Positions 1 through 18,564 of a stretch of 64,000 nt of DNA are shown here, in pieces. Made by a program: the position numbers and the translations under genes. The number at the start of each line of letters is the position of its first letter. Within the stretch, counting starts at the first letter, position 1. Source of the DNA: Bugula neritina (Eukaryota; Animalia; Bryozoa); NCBI GenBank assembly GCA_964035545.1, contig OZ037767.1, positions 25,932,628 through 25,996,627 of the forward strand, written 5' to 3'. The notes below the pieces were generated by a model. The model was not told where the DNA came from, searched no databases, and saw nothing but the letters and a program-made list of their open reading frames with translations.

Positions 1-151
1 CATCTATTACAATTATAAATTACAATTATGAAAAACTACAAGACAGTGAAACAAGAGCAAGAAAGTCTATAACTGCTGAAAGTTACAAGAAAAAGTTAAA
101 CATATAATTCACTACATTATAGATTATTAGCTAATAAAAGCAACAACTTGC

Positions 152-763
152 CTCCTGAACAGGCCTGTATGATGACCAGTTTGGGTCTACCGGCCATCTT
201 TGTGAACTTATAGTTGGACAGCAAATCTAGGATTTCCTTTCGTTGGACAGATATTTCATCTATACCACAGATGGTAGTCTCGTCACCATGTGTCATGATT
301 ACCAAAACAAACATACCATAGCAGCCATGTTCTTCATTTTGTGTTTCACTATGTATTGTATCTATCATTTCCTGTCAATAAAAAACACTAAAATTTAAAA
401 GAATAAAATAATGGTTTATCATATTGTTAAATAAAAATATTATAATAACAAAAGAAACCGGCTAAAAGTAGACTAATGTGAAAATCTATTAGTCTAATAA
501 ATTGATTACAAAGTATCCAAACATCAGTAAAGACAGCACCTATAGTTGAACCGTGAGCAAACTCATCAGTGATTGGCCAACTTAAAGAAGGTTGGACTAA
601 CCTGTGCTGTCAAGTCTTGATGCCGTGTACAATCGAAAGCAAGCGCAGTAAAAACATTTTCAATGTTTTGCGTATCGACATCAGAACCAAGTCTAGGAGG
701 ATCAAAGTTATAGTTGTTTATAATGAGACACCTTCCTCTATAAGGCTGAGATATCTGGTACAC
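152..763 (-). CDS. Caspase large (p20) subunit exons of the Roco-caspase gene
   Basis: Exons 763-602 and 371-152 join in phase 0: VYQISQPYRGRCLIINNYNF..RLGSDVD..VLVIMTHG..PKLVIIQACSG. Catalytic His and Cys are present, as are the Arg and Gln that form part of the caspase S1 pocket. Confidence 0.93.
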
Positions 764-3700
764 CTGCAAAGGTGAGAATGCATATCCAACCTGCGGACAA
801 TGCGAAAACAGCGTTTCATAAACTTTGGTAAAGTGATCTCTTTAAATACTAAAGTGTCCATCTAGAGTGGCTCAAAATCAACCAGTTGTTTAGTTTAGAA
901 AATTAGCCTGGTAACTTCAAAAAAATCATAAGTGATCCAACAATGAGTCAAAATGTCAAAACTACAAAGTAAATATTTTGCAAACCACAATATCTGTGTA
1001 CAGTCACGTTGACCGAGTGCCTTTGATTTATTTATAATGTAATTTCTATTTTAAAGCCAGAAACTAACTCATGCCTCCTTATAATTATCAGTATGAAAAA
1101 AGCTAAAAATCCTCATTTAAGTAGACTAACTCTATCTGATTGGTTGAAGAGTTGCCGGACATCTAGTGAAGTGCATGGCTTCATGTATATGTGAGGCTCC
1201 ATGATAGTAAGGTGGTCGTTCCTCTCATCCATAAACTCATCATCATCTGAGAAACCACCATCATCGTTATCTAAGAAAGCAGGAGCAAATTTACAAGACA
1301 TTTTAAAAACATCTATTTTCATTATGGAAATGGGTCATTTTATTTAATTTAGTACACACTGGAAATCTCTAATTTTTAGCTATTTTTCACAATTTAGCCA
1401 CTAAAGAAACATAGGTTTTTGCCCAACATTAGTAAAATATCAATAAATACTTCTAAGTAATCAAGGTTCTTTTTAATTTTGCTTGATTTCCCATGTTTTT
1501 CCTAATTATTCGGCTAATTTGGATTGCGGATCGTTGTTGGTTTTTTTAGTAACGGTCCGCAATCCAAATTAGCCAAATAAATAAGAAAAAACCTGGTAAA
1601 TCATGCAAAATTAAAAATAACCTTGATTATTTAGGTATATTTTTTAATATTTAACTAGTTTTGAGCAAAAACTCATGCTCATTAGCAGCTAAATTGTGAA
1701 AAATAGCTAAAAACTAGAGAGTTCCACTGTGTACTAAACTAAATACAATGAGCTAAATTAAAGTGACGCTCTCAAGCTTACAACACAGTCTGAGAATGAC
1801 ATTTACAAATAGCTGCTGTATATGGCTTTTGATTTTATAAGATTGTGCAATGAGTGAAAAAATTCGACTATGAATAAAGAACAAGTTTTTGATTATGTCA
1901 TTATGCCCATCCACAAGAATTAAATTTATAGAATCACTAAAACCATATTAATTATTAACATTGGTAATTGAATTATATATATTTAAATGAATTGCGACTT
2001 GCGTTTTTAAAAATTCCTAGTTTCTACATGTACTATGGTTTTCGAAAAAAAACATATTTTCAATTTTATTTTCAGAAATATCACTTGTTGAAAAACAAAT
2101 GTATTTTTATTTTCTATTTTTCTGTAGCCAATGAGCCTGCCAAAAGACAAGCTTACCAGACTAGTATAATTATGTAGATAACATTCTAAATTAAAACTAC
2201 ATAAATAGACGTGTGTAGGATAACTTGAACCAAATATAAAGGCTTACTTGAAGCTTGTACAGCTGTAACTGTGCTTGCTTGACCTAAAGCAAAATACATT
2301 TTGAAATTATAAAAATCCAACTACAAAAATATGTATGAAAGATACCCAACATACAGATAAAAATAACAACCATTGAGTAGAAAAATGCTCATAAAACATT
2401 TCAACATTTGTTTAAAAAAGAAGTTTTAATTTAAATTGACAAAAAACTGTTGGATTCAATTTTAACTTACTAAAACCACCCACTTATTTAAAAATGACTT
2501 TAGCTCAATTTTCCAAAGAATTTAAATTCCTGAGATTACCTTCACACATTGATGGAAAACGTTTAACCTCTTCCAAATACTTCGTCAACTGTTTGACATG
2601 ATTCTCATTTAACTCTTTACCTTAAAAGATCCAAGTTCCCATTTAAATTGAATCCAAAATTGCTAAACAAAAGCAGTAATATTATGGTACAAAGAATGCA
2701 AGCAGATACATAAAGAGTGCATGAGAATACTAAGGTATGAGCAAACGCATAGGCGAGATTATTCACCGATGTTTGTGAGGATAAAACCAGAACTTACATG
2801 GTTCAACCAATGGCAAGGGCACGTCTAGGTTGCCCTCTTTATCATTTTCCTTAAAACACTTGACCTGTGTATAACTTTTTGTACGAACATAATCAATTTC
2901 ATCTTCATTGAAATATGCCCAGTCTTTCATGGGTTGATATCCAGGCTCTTCAGCTCGAACATAGATGCAATGACAACAAAACAAATTCACCTCGGGACGA
3001 GTAGCTTTCCCGCACTTTTTAGCACAGCAGACAACCTTTTTGCATGTAATAGCTAACTTCTTCCATGACTGAGAAACCTGAGAGACTGGCGTCGTAACCT
3101 GTAGTATCAGACTGTGTTTTTTAAAGTCGTGGACCAAATGAAAGGAACATTCACCATGCTCAATAGTAGCTCCATTAGCATAGGACCATTTGTAGTACTT
3201 TTCTTCAGCATCGTTGAGCGTGTTAAACATGGCCACGGTGAGTAATTGGTGAACATACCTAGGCAAAGCTAAGCCCTTAAACAATATTTCAACTCTTAAC
3301 TGAAGCATGTTGCCAGCCTTCTTATATGAGTCATCTTTCAATTCAGGAGAGAAATATGGCAATATAAATTGAGGCCTTGGATGAGAATCAACAGGCCCGT
3401 GAACCAAGAAGAATGCTTGTAATACTTCCATCGCCACATTGTAGTCAAAGGCAGACTCGTGATCAAAGATTTGCTTTAAAACAAAGATATCAAGTATACC
3501 ATTAGTCCTAAAATTGTCTATCAAATGGTGATAATCTTCCTTATCCATCACCTTGCCATCAAAACGAACACCTTTGAATTTCTTGGCCATTTGATACCAT
3601 TCATGATAACCGGAGTGATGAAACAGCAACTTAACCATGTCAGTCACAGCCGTAATACGATGAAAAATAAAGTTCCTTAATGAGTCATGATCTTCATACC

Positions 3701-6700
3701 ACAAAATCCTTCCGATATTTCGCAGGTATCGAACTATGACATCAAGTTCATCTGCCCCAGAATACTTTCTCTCAAGATCAGAAAAAGTAAGAAAAGCTTT
3801 ATCTTTATTTTTCTCAATAAAGTCACCAACCTCTTGCCACCATTTTGGAATGAAGCCACTAAACTCTTGGCAATATTGTTCTAATGATTCCGTCAACTGT
3901 GAAAGATTTGGCAGGTCATCGGGGCTATCTCCTAACTCAAAGATATCAGAAAACGAAAACAATCGTCTACTAGTGTTCTCAAAGTAATCAATTTTCTGAA
4001 AGTCTTCCGGTAAGTCCAGTAACTCTTGTTCATCCAAAAATTTTTTTCGAAGTGCTTCAACATTCTCCAAAAGCTGTTCTTTTAAGGATTCGAAACTATG
4101 GGAACTATTTTCAAACTTGTCTTTGTGAGTGAGAACGAGAAGAGGGCGCTTCAACCTAGGACAATCAAGGTATAAGTGTGACAGCCAATCAAAACAAACC
4201 TTTTGAGTAGCTTTCTCTGGCTCATCAAATTCCAATTCAGTACGATATTGCTCCATGTTTACAACTATTAGAGGAATGCAGTGATCTTTCAGAGCCATTT
4301 GGTAGGCCATATGGTACACTTGATGGCCGCCAAAATCAACAAACCGCAAGCTACAATCTTTGAGATCAAGCTTGTTAAACTCAAAAACCTGGGTGGTGTC
4401 ATCTTTCTCTGAGCTGATGCAGCGTGTGGTAAACATCCTTCGTTTTTCTTTCAAACTACGTACCAAACTAGTCTTGCCGGACATCAACTCCCCGATGACA
4501 GCAACCGTGCCAGCAATAACTTTCACTTTACCCTTCTTTAGATCATTGTAAAACTTAAAAATCGCTCTTTTACCTTGCTCGCAAACCGCAAACGGAGGGC
4601 TATTGAGTGCCTCACAACGACGGCAGTCAATAGTGGACAGTTTTGTCAAATTTGTTAAATTCTGGTCTAAATTTTTGAGAACTTCGTTTGATTGAACAGA
4701 TCCCAAGCTGAGGACTCGTAGTTCTTTGAAAGAACAAACAACAGGAGGAAGAGTCTCAAACTTGTTCATTCCAAGACTTAATATCTCCAAATTCTTCAGC
4801 TGTGATAAACTAAAATAAATATGATGATTTTTCACATATAACGATACTTAGATTAATATTATATAATACAGATTATAACTAAAAGAATCAAGTTTTGTTA
4901 TTAGCTAATTATTGGGATATTAAAAATTCTCAGTTTGCAGAAGCTTTTGCACTTGATATTGCCAACATTAATACAATTTGTGCTAAAACATATAATATTT
5001 AGATGATAATATGCTCAGCAGTATTACCTCGCATCTATTTCTTTGAAAACATAATTTTAAAATAGTTGCTAACAAATACAAGCATTACATAACATTTCCA
5101 ACTATGCTATATCATAGTAAAGCAAATTTAGAGGGAAAAGTTTAGAAAAGTAGTTTACCTTTCAGGTAAATCGTTGAGATCACAATTTACAAGGCGAAGT
5201 GTTCTAAGTGAATGAATCTTCGCAACACCAGAGGGCAGACCTTTACTGAAATCATTATCCGACAGATCAAGGGATAGCAGACTCTCCAGGGCTTTACAGC
5301 TACAAAAACAGGGCATACTTAAAACATTAAACTGAGTGAGTAGTTAAAATTTCTTGGTAATGCCTAAATGATTAGAGCTATAATAACTTAGATGATATTG
5401 ACAAATAAATATATTTTAAATAAAGTTTGAAATATATTTTGTAAGCTTTTGAGATACACTAATAATATATGATATGAACATGCAGAGCAGACCTGTCAGG
5501 CAAACTATGGAGGTTACAGCTAGCAAGGTTCAGATCTTCTAATTCAGAGAGCTCTGCGAGGATAGGTGGTGGTGAGCCATTTTCAAAGTCATTGTAAGAA
5601 ATATCCAACTTCTTAAGACTAGTCATGAACTTGAGCCTTCAAATTGATCAATGCAGTAAATAACTTGAGTACATAAAAAACTTACTGCAGTATTAGAAAA
5701 TAGCTAACAATGAAAAGGTTTAAATATGTAAAGATGGAAACTGTTTAATAATTCGAAAGATATCCGTTTTAAAACATAACCATTAAATATAGAGAAATAC
5801 GATGATAACACAAGTTTCGTCCTAATAATTGAGGGCTCACTGTTAGTGTGAGCATAGGATAGCTTTTACACTTGACTAACTTTGGTATAATATAAAAACA
5901 CGTGTTGGCTATTCAGATCTCTGTTCCTCGCAAAGACTAAAACAGATATGGTGAGAAACGGTGAGAATAGTTTATGAACACGTCTGCATGTTCACTACTT
6001 ACGAAGGAAGGCTACGAAGATGAGATTTTTTCAGCTGAAGATCAGTAACTGATGTCAACTCAAAGATGCAGGCTGGCAGGGCACCTTCAAACCAGCTCTC
6101 GGATAAGTCTAGTGTTTTCAGCCCCACCATATTTTTCAAACTAAAGCAAGAAACAAATATATACATAATAAGCTGTACATAGCATATATAAAACAAGAGA
6201 TATGCATCCTATCTTTAACATAACAGCTTTTCTACAATAAAATATGTAAACTATACTGCTTATTTAACAATTTAATAGCTCAGATATCCTAACAACATGG
6301 TGAGTATTAACTAAAAAAGATGCAACAGGTATGATAGTAAATGCAACGCAGACTGCAACATGAAATGCTGTTTTTACATTTGTAATGCGCAATATTTCTT
6401 ATAAATTTTATAAACATTTTACAGGAATCATTACACTAATAAAACTACAGTAGCTACGTATTATGCATGCACCTAACATCTAAAGTCCGTCTATTGTATA
6501 GAAATATAGAAATGAGATGACCATATAAAATTGAAATCAGTGAAACATGCAGAGAGAGAAAATGTTTTGTGTGCCAGTTAACCACAATTACAAATATATT
6601 ATGTCATAAATAGTAAACTAAAATGAGATTAGAAATAGGTACCACTACAAGATGAAAAAACTTATAGCAGCAGTATATTAATAAAAACACATGGATACCA

Positions 6701-8912
6701 CTGGTTACCAGCAAACGATGTCAGTGGCAGTATTTGTATTACTAAGCTAATATGGTTAGCATTTCATATAAGAATGAGTGGCAGCTAAATTTACTTTGTT
6801 AGAGTTTACTATAGATATAATAGAGAAGGTGAGATGTTATTTACCTAGTTAAGTATGAAACTACAAATAACCATAAAATTTTAGTACTTGAGTTTTATGG
6901 AGCGTAGATATAATTCTAAGTACACTGGGAAATATAATGAACAAAAATATTATGTTATATAATATATGTTATAGATGTTACACAGGGTTAGCCAACAATT
7001 ATGTAATGTTTATAACTCTATTGCATTTAGCACAATGATCAATTATTATTAAATATAAAATTTAAATATAAAAGTTAAAAGTTTGAACACTGGTGATGCT
7101 AATCAATCATATTTTATTACAGGAAACCCTAACCTCTCATCACCTTATTTCTTGGAAAAGTAATACTGATAAAAATTGAGTAAGTGGGTTAATAAACATA
7201 TTCAAAATGATAAATGCAGAGTAAACAAATAATGAAATGACAGCAACAATATATACTTGATAAACCTGTACATATGATCCCACTACCCAAACAGGACAAA
7301 GTAGAGATATGTGAGGAAACCTGTACACATGATGCAAATGTTCCAACAGAATAACTTGTGTGTTTCTCTGTACTATATAGCATACATGTATATGTGATTT
7401 ACTCCATATAACATTGGCAGCAACATGGGGGCATGTTTATATCCAGAGGCACTACATATATCTTTATATTGACACAACACATATACTTACTCATACTATA
7501 TGCATACGTAGAGACACACTGGTGTAAAAATTGCCTTTCTATAGAATATGCTATATTTAGAGAAAAAAAACTGTATCTAGTAAATGAATTGTGTCTATAA
7601 ATAGTTTTAATCTAGCGAAACAGCTTATTTTATTCCAGAATATTTATTAATGAAGGACATGGTGTAAGGTTTGTTCCAGAATACTTATTTCACAAAGGAA
7701 ACAAAGCCAAGTATATTAGAGGTACCTGGAAGGAAGAGAAGAGAGTTCAGAGCGAGTAATTCTAAATACGCTAAGGTTGGACAAATCTGAAATGTAGTCA
7801 GGAATGCCATTCGGAAATTTACTGTCATTGATGTGCAGTGTTTGTAGTGATTTGAACCTACAACGCAAAACAGTTGTAGCACTAGGGTGACATTTTAGTA
7901 ACTAGCAGAAATTCAACTCTAACAAACTCTAATACTGAGCTAAAACAGTGTAATCTATATAGTTTAGATGAAATACAAAAACTAGGACTCATCAGGATAA
8001 AATTAATTATATATATATGCAAACGTACAAAATCACTAAATACGAACTTGAAAACCATTTTCTTAGCAACCATAAAAAAACAATGAAATGCAAAAAATTT
8101 TAAACTAAGGATAAAATAAACAAAACATAAAAACTGACTGCGAATTTTATATCTCTTAGATAACTATAAAATAATTTTTAATAAGCACTAACTTTCCTAA
8201 CACTGGTGGGAAAGCATTGATATTTTCCACTAGCATGTTGGTAACATGAGGAGCGACAGTATCTAATGAATCAGGGGGATCTCCTCTGATACACAAGTGT
8301 GTTATGATGTCATCTCCAACTTCCTCTTTCAACTCAGCCATGGTGATGCGTCTCAAATCCATCTCATCAGTCCGAGGCATCTCTGATAAGTTAGCATCAT
8401 CCAGAGCATACCAGACAAAAAACGTCGGACCTAACAAAACCAAATATATCTTATTCAGAATCAATTTATGATTCTAAAAATATGTTTTTAAACAAAATGG
8501 TTATTCCTAAAACAAGAAATTCACAAATATATATTAGTTTTATTCAACATGTAAACTATGGTAAACATTTTAAAAGCATATTAAACTTATTAAAATTCTT
8601 TCTAAATACTCATAACTCAATTATTTACTAACCTGTCTAACAATAACCCGATACAACTTGATACAACAAAACAGCTCAGTTAGTGTCATTAATCAAGTCA
8701 AAGACTAGCATTATATCATGTAATTCTAAGATACTATTCAATAATTTATCTCTATTTTCTACAGACTGTTGATCAATATATTATCTTAACTCACCAAAAC
8801 TATCAAAACCACCAACATACGAAGTTGGGAAGTCGTTAACAGGAACTTTGTTTATGGGCCTCACTTTTGGGCAAACCGCTTTCCGCTTCTTGTTTTTCTG
8901 CTGCTTACTCAT
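152..8912 (-). CDS. LRR-ROC-COR (Roco) GTPase fused to a C-terminal caspase (peptidase C14); 12 coding exons in window, 3'-partial (the p10 subunit should lie beyond base 1)
   Basis: Exons 8912-8795, 8430-8193, 7857-7726, 6140-6003, 5636-5493, 5299-5159, 4809-2798, 2620-2540, 2283-2248, 1270-1131, 763-602, 371-152. They total 3562 nt with no in-frame stop and compatible phases at every junction; introns are GT-AG except the last donor, which is GC. Motifs: LxxLxLxxN LRRs; PPFAVCEQGKRAIFKFY pre-ROC helix; G1 GELMSGKTS, G3 DFGG, G4 THKD; COR IPKWW and LRNIGRILWY; caspase YRGRCLIINN, RLGSDVD, MTHG, GRPKLVIIQACSG. Confidence 0.85.
1335..1751. mobile_element. Foldback/MITE-like long inverted repeat (arms about 200 bp, loop about 15 nt) in a Roco-caspase intron
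   Basis: Left arm TTAGTACACACTGGAA...GGCTAATTTGGATTGCGGATCGTT pairs with right arm AACGGTCCGCAATCCAAATTAGCC...TTCCACTGTGTACTAA, with scattered mismatches; no ORF. Confidence 0.8.
2798..4809 (-). CDS. 2012-nt exon encoding the last LRRs plus the ROC GTPase and COR domain
   Basis: Lies within ORF 2763..4835; acceptor at 4811-4810, donor GTAAGT starting at 2797. P-loop GELMSGKTSL, switch I Thr (DDTTQ), DFGGHQVY, VLTHKD, Roco-type COR motifs and a C-terminal CCHC. Confidence 0.92.
5159..7857 (-). CDS. Four symmetric (phase 2-2) LRR cassette exons, about two repeats each
   Basis: Exons 7857-7726 (132 nt), 6140-6003 (138), 5636-5493 (144), 5299-5159 (141). Examples: LKKLDISYNDF..LEDLNLASCNLHSLP and LLSLDLSDNDF..LRTLRLVNCDLNDLP. 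Confidence 0.88.
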
Positions 8913-13575: not shown

Positions 13576-16500
13576 ATGCAAAGATTGCCATCATCTCTAG
13601 CATCACCTGAATGGGAGCTTATTGATCCAACTCCAGATCCTGTTGCTTTGTTCTTAGCATATAACCAACAGTTCTTTTGGGGAAAGCTTGAGTCTGTTAT
13701 TGTTAAATGGAGTCCTCAAATGACTTCGTAAGTAGAGTACCGATAAAATATTCAGTTATGACATTTCTATTGATATAACAAATTTTTAGCAAGAGTAGAT
13801 TTCACTTGTCAAATACACTTTGTAAATGTTTTTTGTCAAGATGTATGTTATTGCTGTAACTTTTAGATAAAAATTATATATGTGTATGTCATCTCTTGAT
13901 TCTAGCATACTTATGCCTTAAATTACTAGATGTAACACACATTAAAATGTAAAAAATATGTTTCTATTTAGTATAAAACAACATTCAAATTTCTTTGCAA
14001 ATCATTGCATTTATTCATCAACTGAAACTAGGTGAAAATGAAAAGTCAACAGAAGCAAATTCTTCACTGAAATATACACAGTGTATTTACTGGAAATGAT
14101 TTATAACCTTGACATTGCATTAGTGTTTAATACCTGCAGGTGTGCGGGTATCTGCTCATATGAAGGTAGGGGTGGTTTGTGTACAATCAGCCTGAGTGCC
14201 CCGCTACTGAAGTTACGACCCCGTAAAGATCTTGTAGAAACTCTACTACATGAAATGATACACGCCTATCTCTTTGTAACACAAAATAATCGTGACAGAG
14301 ATGGTCATGGTCCAGAATTCCAAAAACACATGCATCGAATTAGTTCAGAAGCTAAGATCAATATTACAGTGAGTTTTTAATTGTTGGTGGCATTTTTATG
14401 AGACTGGTGTAGCACAGCATTAAAATGTAAATGGTGCCTATTTCTATCCTAGCCATTTCCTTGTATTCTAAGCTAAATGTGGTGTTTATTTTGCAGTTAG
14501 AGTATAGGAGATCGATGTTTGTAAGATAGCATGGCACATTGTACCCAATAATTAAATGTTTTGCATTTGAAAATTTTATTGAATCTAATCAAAGTGTCTA
14601 TCTAACAGTCTGTAGTCCAATGATGTGGTTTTATGTTACTTTTTTTGCTTTAGTGGTAGTGACTAATACTTTGTAAATTAATCATCATTCATTTTCCAGT
14701 CTTTACCTTGTAGATTTACCATTCATTCAGAGACGAGGTCCGTCACTATCAGACTCATGTGTGGAAGTGCAATGGTCCGTGTCAGCACACTAAACCGTTT
14801 TATGGTATATTGAGGAGGTCACGGAATAGGCCTCCTGGACCCAATGATTTCTGTAAGTTTTTAGTGGTTGGGTCTAACTTGTACATAGGGAGTCTGACTT
14901 TGTGTCACTAAACAATTCTTGCAAAGCTAGCTATATCATCACGGTGCCACAGGATTTGCTTTTATTAGGTATGTTGACTTTTATACCTCCAGTTGTGCAT
15001 AGTACGGCATAGTTGTACTGGCTGACAAGATCATGAATGGTCTGGTGTTAAGGCAGCTACAATATCTCTTATCTTTGAGCATTCAAAAGCTTAAAGAGCA
15101 CTTCATTTGAAACAAAATGGCAGGCTGTTGATAACTAGCAACAGCATAAATTAATATTATTTCACTATGTGGTTTGTTTAATAGAAAATCTATATGATAA
15201 TTTATGCGTTAAATGCTTTGCTATATGTGAGAACACATTAATTGTAATTTGGTGCTTTGTCCTTTTTAGGGTGGTCAAGACATCAGGCATCATGTGGCGG
15301 AAAATACGTAAAGATCAGTGAACCCGAAGAGTTTACGAAGAAGCAGCAAGTGAAACGTAAATGCTGTAACTTCTCTTTACAAAATAGTGATCAATAGTCT
15401 GTCAACCATTGTATTTCCTCATCCTACACTATTCGATGATGTTAACACCTGTCGCTTTCAGCAGCTAAAATACTTGGCACAGTGTTTTCACTCTGCTTCT
15501 TGTAATACATCTCAATTTTAAATTTTTCAATTTTAATTGACTTCAGACAAAAAGAATTATTACGCATTTATGTAAAAAGCTTGTGTAGCAAGTTGTTTTT
15601 GCAAACTTTCATGTAAATTACATCTAACTTACCAAGAAAATTTTACATCTAACATCTGACACAGTCTCGCTGTTCTAGCTCATAAATTAATATACAATTC
15701 GCCACAAAATGTATTTAATTTTTTGTAGAGTCTAAAATTGAAGCTAAGCGTAAAAAGGAAGATGCAAAAAACAAATCAAAGATTACCAACTTTTTTCCGA
15801 CTAGTCCAGCACAAAAGGTGGGTGGAGTATATTTAGTAAGAAAATTGTCTAATTTACTTAATCAAATCAAATGGTTTGTTACGCAACACCTGGTGGTATT
15901 TGACAAAAGACCTGAGATGGATTGTTACTATACTCATACATATTGCACTTGTAAGACTAAACATATATTCTATATGCAGTCATGCTGTGTGTTATGTTTA
16001 TGTGTTTCCCAGTAACAACAGGTGAAGGCCATCGCCAATCAAACTTATTTATTCATTTTTGACTAATAATAACAGACCACAATAGATTTCACCAATTAAA
16101 TATTTTCTTGATATCTTCCCACTATAAAAATGTGTTGCTGAATGTGAATATATATTTTATTTTTACAGGGAAATTCTGTTCCGCCTTGTAACAACACACG
16201 CAGTAATAACATAACTCCAACAACTAAAATAACTCCACGTGGTAACACAACTCTAAGTAATAATATAGGGAGTCGACTAGGTGGAAACTCTTCCATTTCA
16301 AAGGTGAGACTAAAGTCTCATTACCCAGTTTCAATTTTAGTTTCTAAATCATCTATTTCCTGTTTGAGCCAGCAGCAGAACTTCATTTGTGTGTTTAATC
16401 ATAAAAGATTTTTATTCCAAAACATACAGCAAAGCAGTGTATCGAGATTTTATTTTATATTATTTTTTTCAAATGCCTGAGAAATTTATAGCTGTAGTTA

Positions 16501-18564
16501 TATAATCTGGATACTGCAAATGTTTAAAGTCGCCCATCAGCTCCTATCTCAACAGCAGCGAAGCTAGGCCTGGTTTTTTCGAAGTTTTGTTTATTTGGTA
16601 GACTGCAGAGTAAATTGCCCAGGCAATGTTACCTTCATGATCTATTTTGTTGGCTAGGCACCAAATCTTCCATTAGATTTTAATAGTGCTTGCAGTTTTC
16701 GCTTATTGGTTTATAAACTAAAATATTTATACTACTTGAGCTTTCAATACTCTGGAATGCTTCAATTCTTTTACAGGAATAAGTTTGCTAGTTTGGTGCT
16801 GGTTATGTTAGCTGCCTTATACTTGTATTTAAAGACTTGACAGTCTACACTGTATGCACTCGCCACGTCACGTATTCATTGAATTTGGTTAGCATTCTGG
16901 GAATGTTCTGTTACTGCTTATGCTACTAATTTATTGGTTACGGTGAAGCTCAAAGCTACATTTCAGGCACTGCTATAAAAGAAAATATCTATATGTGCTA
17001 TTTTTCTAGTTCTTTATTAACTTTTCTTTGTACCTGACAGGTTATGACAGTGCGGCGTATTCCAGGAATTGGAGAGATTCCAGTTCGAGTTGAGCCGCAA
17101 TCTAATCACTCTACAATCTCTCCGTCTACTTCCCAATCTCGTGTCAATAGTTTTACTCTTCCTCAGTCTAAGCGTACCAAATCTACTGCAACACCTTCTG
17201 CTAGGAGTAAGGTTGGAGCTATGAAGCCCACCTCATCAAACAAGATCTTAGAAACCCATTGCTATTCTTCTGATGAGGACATTCCTTTACTCAAGCGTCC
17301 AGCCAACACACCACGATATTCTACTGGGAAAATGAAGCTCAAAGGTATTAATGGTATAGTTGTACAATGCATTATGCTAGCCTAATATGTTTATGTGGAT
17401 ATAATGTACAGTGATTATTACACAAATACTAGTAACGTTATACATGCATGTACTTGCTAGAAATATAGCAGCTGTCAACTACGTGTATGTCCTTGACTAT
17501 TTCTTGTTTCATCTGTTTCTTAGAGTCCACTAGTTCCACGGTTATTCTCCTGTCGGATTCTGACGATGAAATTTTAGATGCAATGATCTCAACAGCCAAA
17601 CGAAAGACATGCACGAAGAGGTCAAGTTCTGCAGTTTCTTCAAGTATCTCTTCATCAGGTCAGCATTTTTTCTGCATCTAAGAGAAATAAATATCGTTTT
17701 AGGGTATACTGGCTTTGTAAGTACTATCTGTTACAGTGGTCAGTGTTTTATATATCTGTTTTTGTATCTGCTTCCCAAATATTTATAAAAACAAAATCCT
17801 AATTGGGCTAATTTTCTAGGCATAATTTGATACACCATTTTAAATGTATTTGAGAATTTAAATTGCAGCAGTTATAGTTTTGACTTTCATGTTTCTTTTA
17901 GCTTCTAGTTGATATGTTTATCAGTCATCTTTTTTCATAGATTACTTATAAACATGTACCTTTAGTTTCCCGCATCACTGTATCAGTATGCCCGTGACAA
18001 CGCACACATGTTAATAGCAAGTGATCTTTGTTAGATTGCAATACTGCCACTGGTGCTGATTCTAATGATGTAACTCTCCTTCCTACTTCTAATCCACACT
18101 CCTCAGTGCAGCCAGATAATCAAGTAGGCACTTGTCCGATTTGTGGAGTTGCCTTTCCAATGAGAGAGTTGCTACACCATGCAGATCTATGCTGTAGAAA
18201 AGACAACTCCTCCATAGTAAGTGTAAGTGTTTATAGTAGGCACACATTTATTTTGCAAGTCGTTTTTTCTGCTTGTCGTCCCAAGAATTTTTGTATATTT
18301 TTAGCTGCAAATGATTATCATAATGTTAATTTTAATGGCCAATAATTGAACTTGGATTAAAACTGCTGTTTTCTTGTAGATTCGTAACCAACAGTATTCT
18401 CTACAACTTGGTTATATGTTACTTGATTGCACACGTAAACATAGTATGTGTATGTGTTTTAGGCCAATAATAATGACATGCCGGTGTCGTGCCCCATGTG
18501 TGGGCAGAGAGTGTCTCTCAGTGACATTGATAGTCATATTGACAGATTCTGCAGTAACGGATGA
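13576..18564 (+). CDS. SPRTN: DNA-dependent metalloprotease Spartan (SprT family, DNA-protein crosslink repair), about 517 aa, 10 coding exons
   Basis: Exons 13576-13727, 14140-14368, 14714-14852, 15270-15356, 15729-15817, 16169-16303, 17041-17344, 17524-17658, 18035-18216, 18463-18564 (1554 nt, all GT-AG, in frame). Motifs WELIDPTPD, CAGICSYEG, LLKLRPRKDLVETLLHEMIHAYLF (HExxH), GHGPEF, zinc-binding WKCNGPC..HQASCGG and C-terminal UBZ4 fingers. The true start could lie in an upstream exon. Confidence 0.95.

Follow-up and report, generated by a model that had tools for sequence, protein, structure and literature searches.

Introduction

Does a locus of the bryozoan Bugula neritina encode a sensor, a GTPase and a caspase in one polypeptide chain, and what would such a protein do? 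The locus lies on contig C3 of the 216-Mb genome, in a stretch of 64 kb that is called the window here. A preliminary description of the window, made from the letters alone, proposed an LRR-ROC-COR-caspase fusion acting as an immune receptor. Its Roc-COR core is common to MFHAS1, LRRK1/2, DAPK1, and the Roco protein of Chlorobium. MFHAS1 has no enzyme after COR, unlike the Bugula gene, in which a caspase follows in the same transcript; LRRK and DAPK carry kinases instead of a caspase. MFHAS1, LRRK, and DAPK are single-copy. In the literature covered, from which subscription journals were absent, no study of a bryozoan Roco-caspase family and no functional test of any Roco-caspase was found. 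In this study, we describe the gene, its transcripts, its family, and its relatives.

Materials and methods

Exons were joined by script, and the frame was checked. Pfam was searched exon by exon. Public relatives (P0002, P0033, P0034, and P0166) were used for fold comparison and wider searches.

Four RNA runs from four studies were compared with the gene from its P-loop through its last exon. Window positions equal L023 positions minus 1428. The six junctions at the 5' end (exons 1-7) rest on splice signals, on the overhang of a 2348-nt RNA contig, and on the GenBank model KAF6024315.

Results

Gene structure and neighborhood

The gene encodes LRR, Roc, COR, linker, and caspase (p20 and p10) regions on the minus strand in 15 exons (Table 1). 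The joined exons form a single open frame, stop-free across 1334 codons. Twelve exons lie within the window. Exons 13-15 are placed 112 to 1401 bases past base 1, and the gene ends approximately 1400 bases past that base. All introns have AG acceptors and GT donors, with the GC donor after the catalytic exon as the sole exception. The three linker exons have exactly the boundaries first proposed (81, 36, and 140 nt; about 86 aa). No signal peptide or membrane helix was apparent at the N-terminus encoded by exon 1. Two GenBank models of B. neritina, KAF6029336 and KAF6024315, both named CASP8, are 94-97% identical to the gene. The splicing of the linker in the GenBank model EB796_012341 is unlike that of the RNA contigs, and this model looks mispredicted there.

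Table 1. Features of the Roco-caspase locus and its neighbors (window positions unless another locus is named).
Feature	Position	Strand	Description
Exon 1	8795..8912	-	ATG at 8912; basic, predicted disordered N-terminus
Exon 2	8193..8430	-	N-terminal cap with the first LRR turns; five other loci have weak matches upstream
Exon 3	7726..7857	-	Two LRRs, symmetric phase 2-2
Exon 4	6003..6140	-	Two LRRs, phase 2-2
Exon 5	5493..5636	-	Two LRRs, phase 2-2
Exon 6	5159..5299	-	Two LRRs, phase 2-2
Exon 7	2798..4809	-	2012 nt; last LRRs, Roc GTPase, COR, conserved CxHC...C...PC cysteine cluster at COR end; RNA-backed
Roc P-loop (G1, GELMSGKT)	4470..4493	-	Followed by G2 Thr, G3 DFGG, G4 THKD
Exon 8	2540..2620	-	Linker, one predicted helix (model of Watersipora relative); RNA junctions
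Exon 9	2248..2283	-	36-nt linker exon; RNA junctions
Exon 10	1131..1270	-	Acidic linker (SDDDE) with a pre-caspase motif; at least 12 of 18 paralogues have a counterpart; RNA
Exon 11	602..763	-	Start of caspase p20, first S1 arginine (RLGSDVD); RNA
Exon 12	152..371	-	Catalytic His codon 290-288, Cys codon 161-159 (QACSG); GC donor 151-150; RNA
Intron toward exons 13-15	1..151	-	Leads out of the window
Exons 13-15	L021 9316-9125, 8659-8550, 8167-8027	-	Intersubunit linker, p10 with second S1 arginine, then stop
SprT-like (Spartan) gene	14042-18342	+	Upstream, divergent from the Roco gene
Agrin gene	19630-41000	+	Upstream; NtA, Kazal, laminin EGF, laminin G
Two tandem MFS transporter genes	L021 130-5550 and L022 5370-7680		Downstream; apparently SLC17-like

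Three trivial origins were considered. A pseudogene was ruled out by the open frame and the spliced RNA, and an assembly chimera by the RNA and the GenBank alleles. Bacterial contamination or recent transfer was ruled out by the introns and the neighboring SprT-like, agrin, and MFS genes.

The introns contain repeated elements. A palindromic element of approximately 417 nt, with arms 82-90% complementary, occupies window positions 1335-1751 in intron 9 and is probably a miniature inverted-repeat transposon. Very high RNA depth at L023 positions of approximately 900-1070 (intron 13) and 2750-3100 (intron 9) comes from dispersed repeats, of which other copies are abundant in the RNA runs.

Transcripts

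The transcript was present in all four RNA runs, including a symbiont metatranscriptome; the RNA source strain differs by a few percent from the assembly. In X1 and X4 (two studies), one 1690-nt RNA contig runs from window position 3374 in COR through exons 8, 9, 10, 11, and 12 to exons 13-15. The same junctions were found in shorter contigs in X6 and X7, the last junction being missing in X7. Every junction from 2798/2620 through the last exon is thus covered by RNA contigs. Several intron bins have no depth; hence, the RNA is spliced. Exons 13-15, which carry p10, are intact and transcribed. The single chain of the preliminary description is borne out by the open 15-exon frame and by spliced RNA from COR to p10. 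Further upstream, the 2348-nt contig overhangs the compared stretch by 1210 nt, where 1157 coding nt were predicted, and KAF6024315 is 94.7% identical over aa 1-431.

Alternatively, prediction alone may have joined two separate genes, a stand-alone caspase and a Roco whose frame closes at the read-through stop at 2763. An in-frame stop does lie 11 codons into the intron, and RNA contigs can drop rare isoforms. No form reading through the donor at 2798 was seen in these contigs, and the depth over 2797-2763 is what the exons alone predict. The COR-to-p10 contig in two studies, the conservation of the splice site in 18 paralogues, and the Watersipora RefSeq models with the fusion also argue against two genes. 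This reading is already refuted for the main transcript, and we give it next to no credence.

Domains and catalytic motifs

Pfam matches were obtained for LRR, Roc (E 4.9e-6, at the cut-off), COR-A (E 0.006, below the cut-off), and Peptidase_C14 (E 3.6e-8 and 1.1e-10). All four GTPase motifs, G1-G4, are present in Roc. COR follows Roc directly, as indicated by the weak COR-A match together with sequence matches to CtRoco, and over about 700 columns the predicted fold of a Watersipora relative can be aligned with those of LRRK1 and CtRoco. The N-terminal model of the GenBank allele begins with approximately 80 disordered residues, followed by an LRR solenoid of 13-14 repeats. The cysteine cluster at the COR end is possibly zinc-binding. 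No NACHT or NB-ARC STAND domain was found in the gene by profile search.

The caspase contains p20 and p10 subunits, and its His-Gly and Cys dyad is intact, as originally noted. The Arg, Gln, and Arg of the S1 pocket for a P1 Asp are also intact, as judged from an alignment with caspase-9 via the GenBank allele, which is 97% identical. The intersubunit linker is long, as in caspase-9. Among solved structures, the best matches of the caspase (caspase-9, CED-3, and caspase-3) score alike.

The linker was said at the outset to lack a death fold, and this agrees with the searches: no Pfam match was found in the linker, no CARD or DED match at the locus, and no death-fold pro-domain in the model of a Watersipora relative. 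In that model (XP_067940835, pLDDT 84), COR is connected to the caspase by one helix and a disordered stretch of about 50 residues; its best structural matches are LRRK1, the Chlorobium Roco, CED-3, and caspase-9.

A large family of Roco-caspases

The Roc query gave 111 matches, which define 110 loci spread over C1-C8; most of them are clustered on C1 and C6. Open frames of at least 600 codons contain 107 of the matches. The catalytic-exon query gave 138 caspase matches genome-wide, and the p10 query (36 residues) gave 88; such match counts are lower bounds. Paired by eye, all 110 Roc loci, some of which may be broken or allelic, have a same-strand caspase exon downstream, 107 within 10 kb and three, which are uncertain, at 12-17 kb. 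Approximately four-fifths of the caspase loci of B. neritina are of the Roco-caspase type.

Paralogue sequences were compared at 18 loci of the 110. All 18 have intact G1-G4, and 17 have the catalytic Cys. The donor that closes the big exon is kept in 18/18, and the read-through tails vary from 2 to 44 codons. In 15 of the 18, Glu or His stands in place of the S1 Gln; hence, some paralogues may not cut after Asp. The one exception at the catalytic residue is L032 (G000:C6:6124500-6134400), which has Ser for Cys and intact GTPase motifs, and a role as decoy or regulator is possible for it. The window gene is a dispersed, divergent singleton, with 34-38% Roc-COR identity to the paralogues read. 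It is an old copy and probably has a fixed specificity.

Caspase exons also occur apart from Roc. Ten catalytic exons without a Roc match are clustered at G000:C9:9322758-9412889. This cluster includes the closest relatives of the caspase exon of the window gene (47-50%) and may therefore contain either sources of the fused caspase or copies derived from the fusion. Stand-alone relatives of the caspase were also searched for, with two matches. Exon-2-like matches at G000:C1:35497861 and C8:4843764 are separated from the nearest Roc exons by about 20 kb or more; the LRR cassette arrays of some paralogues may be very long.

These data bear on the part played by Roc-COR. It may be mainly a scaffold, in a constitutive dimer that the LRRs hold off; the caspase would then be unlatched by ligand binding, or freed when another protease cuts the acidic linker, with no nucleotide-driven change of oligomer. 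The conserved acidic linker exon before the caspase, the long disordered tether, and the clustering of stand-alone caspases of the same type on C9 fit such a latch. The retention of the G motifs in 18/18 paralogues, with Roc as the best-conserved part, argues instead for a working nucleotide cycle, and we regard the latch as unlikely.

A domain census of the genome, made exon by exon so that split or divergent domains can be missed, gave one partial NACHT, 4 CARD, 3 DED, 9 TIR, and no NB-ARC matches. Several lophotrochozoan groups are reported to have lost Apaf-1 (PMC11463336). Given this loss elsewhere and the limits of an exon-wise search, only the scarcity of NACHT is notable.

LRR diversification and caspase exchange

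A 144-nt LRR cassette varies in copy number among clustered paralogues. Among 18 cassette exons (9 loci), framework positions hardly vary, and the differences fall at exposed positions of LxxLxLxxN/CxL. At ten exposed positions, assigned by the LRR motif after the exons had been seen, pN was 3.9 times the all-site pS (resampled 2.5-5.5) and 2.0 times the same-site pS (1.0-4.4). For comparison, pN/pS was 0.58 in the LRR framework and 0.27 in Roc-COR; the test counts changes among related copies in non-independent pairs and is not a site model. The concave LRR face of the paralogues is under diversifying selection. This selection was seen in the paralogues only. The LRR exons of the window copy are symmetric (phase 2-2) and do not belong to the hypervariable cassette type; of 13 allelic differences in aa 1-400, only about 1 affects an exposed position.

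The caspase has a different history from the rest of the chain. At L030, L033, L035, and L038, Roc-COR is 89-93% identical to that of the neighbors L028, L031, L036, and L041, whereas the caspases of the two sets are 36-39% identical. The caspases of the former four share 64% identity with the caspase of L024, whereas for Roc-COR the identity to L024 is only 33-37%. The Roc-COR tree and the caspase tree conflict with strong support. As judged from these comparisons, caspase modules have been swapped between paralogues.

Two further roles were weighed against these findings. B. neritina is a colonial animal with a bacterial symbiont, and the variable LRRs might read self and non-self at colony contact, or resident bacteria, and kill locally rather than serve as a general pathogen sensor. 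Diversified LRRs fit any recognition race, the transcript occurs in the symbiont metatranscriptome, and bryozoan allo-incompatibility has been named as a cell-death setting (PMC8195603). Lacking a signal peptide and a membrane helix, the protein would have no direct contact with the surface of another colony, and 110 loci on eight chromosome-scale contigs are unlike a single histocompatibility locus. Allorecognition or symbiont control is an outside chance, in our judgment. Caspases have an established role in tissue remodelling. A protease of development or tissue turnover (metamorphosis, polypide regression), with LRRs binding host proteins, was also considered. It suits the window copy, a conserved singleton expressed in all four RNA runs, but leaves the 110 copies, the replacement excess on the LRR face, and the module swapping unexplained, and we consider it improbable.

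Relatives and origin of the fusion

The preliminary description named no characterised animal protein with this architecture, but there are precedents for it. Watersipora RefSeq proteins show the full LRR-Roc-COR-caspase architecture (relatives are named 'MFHAS1 homolog'), and 12 records from Branchiostoma species combine COR or Roc with Peptidase_C14. Similar layouts have also been noted in passing for bacteria, amphioxus, and Owenia. For amphioxus, Zhang et al. (2008; PMC2575513) proposed that an 'LRRs-caspase' couples recognition directly to apoptosis; we infer that their proteins are the Branchiostoma records. Amphioxus LRR-Roc-COR-caspases (e.g., BRAFLDRAFT_67388) have the same domain order as the Bugula gene, with about 25% identity, a shorter linker, and QACRG in the one amphioxus protein read. 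Two Branchiostoma belcheri records, P0197 and P0194, combine COR and caspase with glycosyltransferase or Death domains, the same effector set as in bacterial conflict systems.

In a Roc-COR tree (LG+G4, unrooted, with long branches), the bryozoan proteins formed one group (100/100), two metagenome rows being counted as bryozoan on similarity alone. The amphioxus Roco-caspases nested among amphioxus Rocos without caspase, and a joint clade of bryozoan and amphioxus Roco-caspases was rejected (p-AU 0.017, LG+G4). The two fusions therefore probably arose separately, which we hold with moderate confidence.

An Owenia fusiformis caspase with a ROC pro-domain, one gene in the caspase-Y clade, was reported in 2024 in a caspase study in which bryozoans were not among the sampled groups (PMC11463336). 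Owenia is also lophotrochozoan, and both proteins have Roc and a caspase; compared by description, the Owenia protein is mentioned without COR, LRR, or mechanism. Bacterial LRR-AP-GTPase-COR-effector conflict proteins, with caspase among at least 24 effectors (Kaur et al., 2021; PMC8195603), share fast-evolving LRRs, Roc-COR, and an exchangeable C-terminal effector with the Bugula gene, which differs as an intron-rich animal gene with a p20/p10 caspase; both systems are known computationally only. The nearest identified non-bryozoan matches are animal Rocos. Brown algal ROCOs form an expanded family of up to 47 genes per species, with LRRs on symmetric exons and diversifying selection on the concave face; they have one LRR per 72-nt exon, whereas Bugula has two per 132-144-nt exon, and they carry no caspase (PMC11378527, PMC3341825). 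An unrelated protein at L044 217-2967 (P0200, ENA ERZ1738535) has a pannexin-like LRRC8 membrane domain, LRRs, and a caspase, and could be a chimera.

Discussion

The gene is real and expressed, and its family is very large; its layout is a new variant of one already glimpsed elsewhere, not a categorically new one. We consider it probable that its products are intracellular, single-chain, NLR-like receptors, each activating its own caspase by proximity. The reading draws on the RNA from COR to p10, the 110 paired loci, the conserved donor, the intact motifs, the LRR hypervariability, the module swapping, and the single, partial NACHT match. The receptor role first proposed gained support from the family of about 110 members and the hypervariable LRRs; the window copy itself, which lacks the hypervariable cassette, counts against it.

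In the proposed mechanism, the LRR solenoid would bind a non-self or damage cue, and cue binding would shift Roc-COR toward a dimer, or toward a cluster held by the ligand. The caspase domains, each tethered flexibly by approximately 85 residues, would be drawn together and dimerise; the long disordered tether would favor proximity over allostery. The dimerised caspases may then cut themselves at Asp-rich linkers, with cell death or the cleavage of immune substrates as the presumed output. The Chlorobium Roco is a monomer with GTP and a dimer when nucleotide-free (PMC6337361, PMC11052575), so 'GTP = on' cannot be assumed for a dimer switch. By analogy, a GTP-bound monomer would be the off state and a GDP-bound or nucleotide-free dimer the on state.

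A bryozoan Roco-caspase would thus do the job of an NLR plus its caspase. Sensor repeats, a nucleotide switch, and proximity activation of a caspase are shared with the NLR inflammasome and the Apaf-1 apoptosome as a functional analogy. The Bugula gene differs from both in having a GTPase rather than a STAND ATPase, an N-terminal sensor, and the protease in the same chain, with no CARD, PYD, or DED. As a tentative extension, which we think rather doubtful, cheilostomes may have largely dropped NACHT-type NLRs, with intracellular immunity run by about 110 Roco-caspases through LRR-cassette shuffling, protease-module exchange, and a Roc-COR cycle gating the caspase.

Caspase activity reads out proximity directly; hence, a Roco-caspase would be a natural reporter for the debate in the LRRK2 field over which nucleotide state dimerises Roc-COR, and with what effect. 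For animals, the family points to a third build of intracellular immune receptor, beside NLRs and Apaf-1, and to a large-scale use of Roco-caspases in a phylum whose immunity is nearly unstudied.
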